Assembly: GCA_965644295.1 (NCBI GenBank)
Contig: CBFFRP010000002.1
Location: 139,824 to 203,823 of the forward strand
DNA length: 64,000 bases
Source: Paraphysomonas bandaiensis
Lineage: Eukaryota > Protista > Chrysophyceae
Direction of reading: 5' to 3'
Shown here: piece after piece, positions 58,543 through 59,829 of the stretch
How positions within the stretch are numbered: position 1 is the stretch's first letter
How the letters are laid out: each line of letters opens with the position of its first letter
Made by a program: the position numbers and the translations under genes
The notes under the pieces: generated by a model
Told to the model about the DNA's origin: nothing
What the model saw: only the letters and a program-made list of their open reading frames with translations
Database searches by the model: none

Positions 58543-59829
58543 ATGAGTAAGAACTATAAAGTATATTACTATTATTATGATATGAATGAAGCTGTATATA
58601 TGACTGATGAAGATGACGAAGTAAGAAGATGTGATTTACAAGAGATATTTCACGAAAAGAGTCATCAGTTTAGTATGTTACAAGGATATGATAACACAGA
58701 GTCAGACTTGAAAAGGTTTAAAAAAGATTTTAATATATTGTGTGATGCATTAAAGAAAGTTTCAATCAAAACAAAGAGTAGTAAGTATTTTTCAATCAAG
58801 TATAAGAAGTATTTCAATCATAATGACGCCGTATTATACAATTGGAAGACATACCACAAGGCAGAGACATTAAAGAAGTTTGAGAGAGTATCAAAGACAG
58901 AATTTTACATAATGGAGCGTTGTTACAATTCAGGATTGATAACATTAAACTTAGATTACAAAGAAAAACCCGTGATGTGTTATAGTAGAGACTTTAGTAG
59001 TTATTATAGCAATCTCTTAATCAATATGAAGATACCATATAGAGAAGGTAAAGTATATAATTTAGATAGTGTTGAATATGGAAAATTGAAATATGGAATA
59101 TATAGAGTTGAAATAAACTATACAAACAATCAATTCACAAACGTATTTAACTTTTCACAAGATAATCATTATACCTCAACATTATTAAACTCAGTGTATA
59201 AATATAAAGATTACTTCGGCTTAACATTCAAATTACTGAAAGTAGATGATGAATATGACTATAACGCTTTAATATGGGACTATGATGACTTAATGGATGG
59301 TGATAAACTATTCGGTGAATGGTTGAAAGATATGTTAAGTGTCAAAGAGAAGTTACCAAAGAACAAGTTAGTAAAACATCTCATCTCAACAATAGGAGGA
59401 ACACTGGCAAGCTTTAAGAACTTATATTTTGATGACTTTGATGACTTAGACTTAACAAGAATAAACAGCACTGTTGATAGTGAATACAAACTAAGGAAGA
59501 TTACAAACTCAGGAACATATAAATGTGTGAAAAGCGATGAAGCTTATAAGTATAACTTTGCAAGGATAAAGCCGTTTCTAGTGTCATTAGGAAGGAAGAA
59601 GATGTTTGAATTAGTAATGAAAAACAACTTAATCGACAAATTAGTAGCAATTCACACAGACAGATTAACATTAATTGAGGACTTTAATTTTTCAATAAAG
59701 AATAAGTATTATCCAACTCCAGAAGAGAAATCAAGTGGAAAAATAATATTTTATAATGCTATACATTACAGACATATTTGTAATAAATGTGATAAAGAAT
59801 ACGCCAATTATGAAAAACATGAATGTTAA
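58543..59829 (+). CDS. polB: Divergent, short family-B DNA polymerase (protein-primed type), no recognisable exonuclease domain, 428 aa
   Basis: Ordered motifs ERCYNSG (YxGG), RDFSSYYS (motif A DxxSLYP), KHLISTIGGTL (motif B KxxxNSxYG), PFLVSLGR, AIHTDRL (motif C YxDTDS). Confidence 0.72.
   Translation: MSKNYKVYYYYYDMNEAVYMTDEDDEVRRCDLQEIFHEKSHQFSMLQGYDNTESDLKRFKKDFNILCDALKKVSIKTKSSKYFSIKYKKYFNHNDAVLYNWKTYHKAETLKKFERVSKTEFYIMERCYNSGLITLNLDYKEKPVMCYSRDFSSYYSNLLINMKIPYREGKVYNLDSVEYGKLKYGIYRVEINYTNNQFTNVFNFSQDNHYTSTLLNSVYKYKDYFGLTFKLLKVDDEYDYNALIWDYDDLMDGDKLFGEWLKDMLSVKEKLPKNKLVKHLISTIGGTLASFKNLYFDDFDDLDLTRINSTVDSEYKLRKITNSGTYKCVKSDEAYKYNFARIKPFLVSLGRKKMFELVMKNNLIDKLVAIHTDRLTLIEDFNFSIKNKYYPTPEEKSSGKIIFYNAIHYRHICNKCDKEYANYEKHEC

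Follow-up and report, generated by a model that had tools for sequence, protein, structure and literature searches.

Which enzyme, if any, is encoded by an open reading frame (ORF) that curated sequence models do not recognise? The question is raised by an intact 428-aa ORF at 58543..59829 (+) of a 64,000-nt stretch of Paraphysomonas bandaiensis DNA (contig CBFFRP010000002.1, positions 139,824 to 203,823; hereafter the window, whose own coordinates are used throughout). An earlier interpretation made from the letters alone, called here the sequence-only reading, proposed a minimal family B DNA polymerase (PolB) lacking a proofreading domain. The frame and the motif strings that it quoted are all located as written: residues 150-156 are DFSSYYS (motif A), 278-286 are KHLISTIGG (motif B) and 370-374 are IHTDR (motif C), while its C-terminal CxxC..H.C corresponds to C413-x2-C416...H426-x-C428. 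We conclude that the ORF probably codes for a replicative, palm-retaining truncated PolB of the protein-primed type (pPolB), part of an element of the mavirus-like virophage or polinton-like type within an AT-rich block of the window.

Searches at the sequence level return no assignment. The polymerase has no Pfam match at E<=0.1 and 38 of its relatives have none at E<=1; the curated models DNA_pol_B and DNA_pol_B_2 match neither. PHROGs and PDB sequences, searched by phmmer and by profile, give no match to the polymerase alone or to a 38-sequence profile, and tblastn of a phage collection with the polymerase finds nothing. A scan of IMG/VR with a pattern derived from the family alignment yields 104 pattern matches and 0 confirmed relatives. 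Look-ups by exact sequence find no record of the window polymerase or of an F-box/ankyrin protein from the flank.

The predicted structure gives the first part of the answer. The AlphaFold2 (AF2) model built from alignment A1 has a pLDDT of 92.4 and a pTM of 0.89, with 344 of the 428 residues at 90 or above. Its top Foldseek match among predicted viral structures (BFVD) is the 617-aa polymerase of mavirus virophage, A0A1L4BK92 (E 4.7e-22; TMq 0.70, rmsd 4.5 Å, 424 aligned columns, 17% identity). Next come a 339-aa Harvfovirus-bin polymerase and then many pPolBs of phages, adenoviruses and bidnaviruses. Foldseek against the PDB gives nine matches at E<=0.001, all to phi29 DNA polymerase (best E 6.8e-12, probability 1.0, TMq 0.55-0.60); archaeal RNA-primed PolBs appear at E 3e-3 or worse, so that pPolBs rank about 9 orders of E-value ahead of them. 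The palm/fingers/thumb fold of PolBs is found with a Foldseek probability of 1.0 to phi29 polymerase and to 40 or more viral PolBs. The comparison with phi29 polymerase that the sequence-only reading had suggested reveals a PolB palm, and one of the protein-primed type. The second-best BFVD match (A0A3G5A8K3, Harvfovirus sp., 339 aa; E 6.6e-16, TMt 0.73) originates from a metagenomic giant-virus bin, which hints that similar mini-polymerases, or the elements that carry them, are present inside giant-virus assemblies.

The polymerisation domain, delimited by the conserved motifs and the model, spans approximately 58858..59757 (+) and has palm, fingers, TPR1-like and TPR2-like insertions and a short thumb hairpin. 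Two beta-rich insertions of the model, residues 163-252 between motifs A and B and residues 293-330 between motif B and R341, are the putative TPR1 and TPR2, placed as such from secondary structure and alignment spans. The N-terminal ~105 aa (approximately 58543..58857 (+), from model topology and Foldseek span) precede the palm with the order strand-strand-strand-helix-strand-helix, an order compatible with how an RNase H-like exonuclease fold begins; with phi29 polymerase as target, the Foldseek alignments cover 559-569 columns of its 572-aa chain. No Exo I-III acidic signature is found in the polymerase or in the family alignment, in agreement with the sequence-only reading. Across the 187 family members of at least 350 aa from which all column counts were taken, Asp and Glu are not conserved anywhere in the first beta-strand, and the sole acidic column above 90% within residues 1-140 is E120. 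Because of these two features, the absence of exonuclease activity from the family is well supported by sequence. The model suggests that the N-terminal segment is a vestigial exonuclease-like domain deprived of catalytic acidic residues, as in mavirus, whose pPolB keeps only an exonuclease remnant (PMC11161782). We propose that the protein would have kept a complete polymerisation domain, that its exonuclease would be reduced to a catalytically dead remnant of ~105 aa and that it would dispense with the N-terminal terminal-protein and vOTU domains of its mavirus counterpart.

This compact organisation is the norm of a large family. A word-indexed search finds 56 relatives, nearly all of 400-450 aa. 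An exhaustive profile search extends the family to 2,237 clusters (50% identity) at E<=1e-3, 868 of them at E<=1e-30, and the family members among the matches listed are nearly all 390-470 aa long. The median length of 196 retrieved members is 428 aa and the maximum 566 aa. When the search was repeated with the polymerase region of the 566-aa member, admitting lengths of 311-990 aa, the 50 other matches were all 327-463 aa long. None of the ~250 retrieved relatives is a full-length, exonuclease-bearing enzyme (none exceeds 566 aa), and no fusion of a helicase or terminal protein to the polymerase is seen among them. Among the ten longest members, the N-terminal extension is a NUMOD4/HNH homing-endonuclease module in five cases and DUF5710 in one, and has no domain assignment in four. 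The NUMOD4/HNH fusions are those of the retrieved polymerases P0046, P0082, P0105, P0107 and P0130, and free-standing modules of the same type are found near the helicase in L001 (209-607) and L007 (1664-2287), two of eight contigs, L001-L008, that carry gene modules related to that of the window (metagenomic contigs, with L006 from an NCBI genome assembly).

Column counts in the 187 members reveal which residues the family maintains. The motif A Asp D150, the motif B Lys K278, R341 and the motif C Asp D373 are present in 187/187 sequences. N274 and G286 are found in 184 each, K396 in 183, G399 in 182, E394 in 173 and T372 in 166, and position 282 is Ser in 165 and Thr in 18. Y155, five residues past D150, is Tyr in 171 and Phe in 10 sequences; we take it to be the counterpart of the sugar-discriminating Tyr of phi29-type polymerases. 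Other positions vary: 156 (Ser here) is Pro in 134 sequences and Ser in 7; 285 (Gly here) is Trp in 156, His in 10 and Gly in 4; 374 (Arg here) is Gly in 100, Ser in 29, Asn in 29, Cys in 15 and Arg in 12. Position 371, the first residue of the His-Thr-Asp of motif C, is His in 95, Gln in 56, Cys in 10, Tyr in 9 and Met in 6 members, Asp being outside the five commonest residues. Because His or Gln prevails at this position across the 187 members, the replacement of the first motif C Asp is a trait of the family. The first motif C Asp is also lost in mavirus, pipolin, mitochondrial-plasmid and some archaeal PolBs described as catalytically active (PMC11161782).

Selection acts to maintain the polymerase. 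Compared with its homologue in L001, the closest relative on a long contig (78% identity), it has dN 0.127 and dS 1.08, giving a dN/dS of 0.12 (Nei-Gojobori). Ratios against L001 are rough because dS is near saturation, though far from neutrality. Several claims of the sequence-only reading can be judged at this point. The two catalytic Asp residues that it considered retained, D150 and D373, are each invariant in the family. Its proposal that His-Thr-Asp conservation and dN/dS be followed in homologues brings out His/Gln-Thr-Asp family-wide and the low ratio against L001. Its argument that the ORF is not simply decaying holds, with an intact frame, dN/dS 0.12 and length and motifs conserved throughout the family, and the close homologues, instead of being full-length with canonical motifs, are uniformly compact and devoid of exonuclease. 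The description of the catalytic motifs as rewritten is overstated: the whole family normally has His/Gln-Thr-Asp in motif C, a state also known from mavirus and pipolin polymerases.

The second part of the answer comes from the gene neighbourhood. The polymerase lies in an AT-rich block of 19-32% GC (55430..64000) whose left edge, marked by a drop from 44-54% to 19-31% GC at ~55430, is approximate and which continues past the window. The block opens with a gene for a 548-aa superfamily 3 helicase (DUF5906; 56116..57762 (+), Pfam PF19263, E 3e-12). It is followed by an 81-aa gene (57824..58069 (+)), probably coding for a small helix-turn-helix (HTH) DNA-binding protein and kept at this position in L001, L002, L005 and L007, and by a 112-aa gene (58133..58471 (+)) directly upstream of the polymerase. 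An rve integrase with a C-terminal chromodomain (59826..60845 (-); Pfam rve E 4e-9, Chromo E 2.9e-11) converges with the polymerase. L001, L002/L003, L005 and L007 have the same module, in which a helicase, one or more small genes and the polymerase are met by a convergent rve/chromo integrase; a partial module made of a 104-117 aa gene, the polymerase and the integrase is found in L004, L006 and L008. Polymerases of these contigs are 30-78% identical to that of the window, and the integrase shares 43-58% identity with those of L001, L002, L004, L005 and L006. Even the 4-nt overlap of the polymerase and integrase stop codons (59826-59829 in the window) is found in L002 (3934-3937), L004 (9230-9233) and L006 (6291-6294). 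In L006 the integrase beside the polymerase is called as two genes (6291-7265), which we count as one break. Every gene of the element that the window shows is open, with 0 stops or frameshifts counted.

The two small genes are conserved as well. Relative to L001, the 81-aa product has 82% identity and a dN/dS of 0.10 and the 112-aa product 66% identity and a dN/dS of 0.14; the L007 counterpart of the 81-aa gene gives only sub-threshold HTH/NUMOD-like matches. The helicase of the window is unrelated to that of L001 (1285-3354) save for 40 C-terminal residues, while a helicase occupies the same position in most relatives; at 548 aa, it is N-terminally shorter than its counterparts (587-689 aa). 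By these comparisons, the two small genes travel with the polymerase as a trio while the helicase is exchanged.

The contigs of the relatives also carry genes of viral particles. L002 has a Pox_A32-type ATPase, L001 an adenain-like Peptidase_C5 (E 2.2e-5, above the Pfam cut-off) and L007/L008 a penton of the Sputnik V18-19 family. We identify the relatives as virophage-type genomes because of these ATPase, Peptidase_C5 and penton genes. Contigs that combine the module with the virophage penton, A32-like ATPase or adenain-like protease are 18-25 kb long, and the polymerase of one relative, found on a 22-kb contig, is recorded on 16 contigs, of which 10 fall in the 20-50 kb class.

A further feature common to these genes is found upstream of them. 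The 10-mer AWGGTTWAAA occurs six times in the window for 0.74 expected, a number reached in 0/100 shuffles. All six copies are inside the AT-rich block and four sit 34-42 nt before the ATG of four consecutive (+) genes: the helicase (56081..56090 (+)), the 81-aa gene (57782..57791 (+)), the 112-aa gene (58096..58105 (+)) and the polymerase (58509..58518 (+)). The placement is alike in L001, where three genes (helicase, 112-aa homologue and polymerase) have the motif 35-39 nt ahead of them. Three window genes, the polymerase included, have in common a 75-nt upstream block. The upstream motif to which the sequence-only reading alluded is real and recurrent, and the blocks that hold it are putative promoters. 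A scan for sigma-70 promoters and terminators stays at chance level and is uninformative for such elements. Further right in the AT-rich block, genes are preceded by a related upstream block with a variant core, ACAATTTAAAAAA (begins ACAATTT), at 62830-62842 and 63497-63510 and at a similar distance from the ATG; the two variants may correspond to two expression classes. Altogether, the polymerase most likely copies the genome of the element without proofreading, alongside the neighbouring superfamily 3 helicase, and the replication genes appear to be driven by the common AT-rich upstream motif.

Several points weigh against this reading. A sequence-level link to any curated PolB family is absent, whether in Pfam or in PDB profile searches. 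The assignment of TPR1, TPR2 and the exonuclease remnant follows secondary structure and alignment spans, not residue-level superposition. No capsid, penton, packaging ATPase or maturation protease gene of this copy is visible in the part of the element covered, ~8.5 kb up to the window end at 64000. Three positions set the window polymerase and its closest relatives apart from the rest of the family; the window protein has Gly285 for the usual Trp, Ser156 for the usual Pro and Arg374 for the usual Gly. Finally, neither the polymerase nor any retrieved relative contains a terminal-protein or vOTU domain, and hidden Markov models of both small-gene families, run against 249 retrieved proteins, detect only the families themselves and no fusion to the polymerase.

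This last absence is the first argument for a polymerase of the same family that is not protein-primed, and which either starts chains by itself, like the piPolB of pipolins, or extends primers provided, for example, by the helicase product. In piPolB a KTRG motif replaces KxY, the first motif C Asp is replaced and the exonuclease active site is kept (PMC5695915). The family of the window polymerase has at the KxY position Lys (183/187), Thr/Ser, Thr/Ser and Gly (182/187), which resembles KTRG, and it shares the replacement in motif C; the helicase gene, moreover, opens the module in most relatives. We nevertheless regard this alternative as unlikely. The mavirus polymerase also lacks the first motif C Asp (PMC11161782), yet has a fused terminal protein. 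The exonuclease residues retained by piPolBs are absent from the window family. Of their extended motif, the family matches only Lys...Gly and does not conserve the upstream Lys-His. No primase domain is detected in the helicase, and a conserved small gene suited to encode a terminal protein lies directly upstream of the polymerase.

Under the protein-primed reading, this small gene becomes the candidate for a stand-alone terminal protein, by its position and topology. A gene of 104-117 aa directly precedes the polymerase in L001, L002, L004, L005, L006, L007 and L008. The AF2 model of the 112-aa protein (pLDDT 68, below 50 in residues 70-96) has the order β-β-α-β-β-α-(α)-β, which agrees with the description of the TP/D1 domain (PMC11161782, section 6). 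The match is weak evidence because the beta-alpha-beta-beta-alpha-beta order belongs to a very common fold. Foldseek, with this mediocre model as query, gives no significant match (best E 0.02), the mavirus polymerase being at rank 19 with E 0.19. Tyr85 does not vary across the seven positional counterparts compared and falls in the loop that precedes the final strand. The protein cannot be an active vOTU because it has no Cys. Our preferred guess is that the 112-aa gene encodes a separate terminal protein that would prime the polymerase. A more explicit and tentative scenario, possible but to our eyes rather less probable than not, is that the lineage took apart the TP-vOTU-PALM organisation, keeping exonuclease remnant and palm together, losing the protease and leaving the terminal protein as the upstream gene of ~105-117 aa with Tyr85 as priming residue, or else that it needs no terminal protein and starts chains by itself.

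The departures listed above lead to another alternative, in which the subclade of this copy would have kept the fold in an enzyme that is impaired or repurposed, for instance as a structural or DNA-binding replication factor. Among the ten sequences most similar to the window polymerase, nine have lost the usual Trp285 (156/187 in the family) for Gly, Ala, Glu or Val, and only P0003 retains it; those without Trp include the window polymerase itself, P0002, P0004, P0005 and P0007-P0010. Ser for Pro at 156 and Arg for Gly at 374 go in the same direction. The subclade has also gained the Cys-Cys-His-Cys tail (59779..59826 (+)), whose Cys at 413, 416 and 428 are present in 20-21 of 38 close members and in ~53-57 of the 187 wider members; by these counts the tail appears confined to one subclade. 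We consider this alternative improbable. Within the subclade, too, there is no variation at the catalytic Asp residues, at the motif B Lys or at R341, and the dN/dS of 0.12 was obtained between two members that both have Gly285. Within the replication module the gene has retained both its position and the promoter-like motif before it, and no second polymerase is seen on the contigs of the relatives (L001, L002 and L007/L008 among those surveyed). The non-polymerase role envisaged by the sequence-only reading finds no positive support. That the ORF is the decaying remnant of a full-length proofreading PolB is least credible of all. In its favour are a deficit of ~150-190 aa relative to phi29 and mavirus polymerases and the lack of a Pfam match. 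Against it, none of the ~250 retrieved relatives is above 566 aa, the extra residues in the ten longest are of homing-endonuclease type or without assignment, and a pseudogene is contradicted by the intact frame, the dN/dS of 0.12 and the invariant active site.

The remainder of the AT-rich block and its flank have features of their own. A 68-aa Cys-rich ORF after the integrase (60945..61151 (+)) is found by tblastn at the same relative position in L001, L004 and L006 and has weak zinc-finger matches in Pfam. Next to it, a GC-richer non-coding patch (61150-61800) holds two copies, 97% alike, of a 34-nt palindromic unit (61457-61490 and 61540-61573) and several short repeats of the AAAACCC...AATTTT type (61600-61780). 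Genes to the right of this patch no longer match the contigs of the relatives, and the patch may have arisen by a small insertion or mark the joint of a recombination. Further right, a 129-aa ORF (63541-63930 (+)) has a weak FNIP-repeat match (E 0.0046, below the Pfam cut-off). No convincing inverted copy of the left end of the element is found within the 64-kb window, and Rfam and tRNA scans of the window are empty.

Directly left of the block, a tandem array at 54305-55387 repeats an 87-nt unit at least 10 times (copies 76-87% alike), and because of it ORFs overlap in multiple frames at 54328-55380. The flank contains F-box and ankyrin-repeat ORFs of 2,272 aa (45688-52506 (-)) and 532 aa (39037-40635 (+)), together with TPR and Pro-Thr repeat ORFs. 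Combinations of F-box and ankyrin repeats have expanded in certain giant viruses and in certain protists, so that the flanking DNA may be either cellular or of giant-virus origin. A single ORF of 7,047 aa (7101-28244 (+)) consists largely of Pro-Thr repeats and has a strongly negative GC skew.

The case shows that a polymerase invisible to Pfam, PHROGs and PDB sequence models can be assigned with confidence by combining structure prediction and gene neighbourhood. It belongs to a large family, 2,237 clusters at 50% identity, that is uniformly compact. For annotation, the AT-rich block can be marked as a virophage-like insertion beside repeat-rich, GC-richer DNA. If the enzyme is indeed a proofreading-free polymerase of ~430 aa with a separate or absent terminal protein, it would represent a further step in the published series of domain losses among polinton, virophage and adenovirus polymerases, and would provide a defined gene pair in which to seek the priming mechanism.

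Comparison with characterised systems places the polymerase more precisely. It shares with phi29 DNA polymerase (PDB 2PYJ, 2EX3) the overall fold, beta-rich insertions at the putative TPR1 and TPR2 places and the short hairpin thumb, but identity is only 11-13% and the 572-aa phi29 enzyme has an active 3'-5' exonuclease and canonical motif C and KxY. With pipolin piPolB (PMC5695915) it has in common the replaced first Asp of motif C and a Lys-Thr-x-Gly-like motif at the KxY position, whereas piPolB keeps its exonuclease residues and the upstream Lys-His and is bacterial or mitochondrial; no pipolin polymerase is among the matches of any sequence or structure search made here. The Tlr1-like pPolB-S1H of polinton-like viruses and transpovirons (PMC11161782) is likewise an exonuclease-less palm derived from polinton-type polymerases. 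Unlike the window family, in which no helicase fusion is found, it carries a terminal protein, a vOTU and a C-terminal superfamily 1 helicase.

The mavirus polymerase, organised as TP-vOTU-PALM, is the best structural match; the mavirus enzyme has only an exonuclease remnant, of which the N-terminal ~105 aa of the window protein are the putative counterpart, both lack the first motif C Asp (PMC11161782), and in both cases a superfamily 3 helicase and an rve integrase accompany the polymerase. They differ in sequence (17% identity) and length, the window protein being ~190 aa shorter, and the N-terminal terminal-protein and vOTU part of the mavirus enzyme has no counterpart in the 424-column alignment. 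The window element has instead two small conserved genes upstream of its polymerase. The polymerase departs from the mavirus-type architecture in one defining respect: terminal-protein and vOTU domains are not fused to it. By content it fits the PRT-pPolBs, palm-retaining truncated pPolBs of mavirus-related elements, among which DUF5906 is specific to the mavirus group and marks group 1 (PMC13215967). Like the PRT-pPolB of pMVRE group 1 (PMC13215967), the window polymerase has kept the palm and lost the exonuclease in an element with DUF5906 helicase, rve and chromodomain, and like that family it is abundant in metagenomes and present in genome assemblies, here L006. The fit to the PRT-pPolB notion is by domain content and gene neighbours, not by phylogeny or terminal repeats. 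The uncharacterised clade supposed by the sequence-only reading is thus of a kind already published, as mavirus pPolB (PMC11161782) and as PRT-pPolBs (PMC13215967): truncated pPolBs are known, and it is by its priming that the family could form a distinct variant among them.

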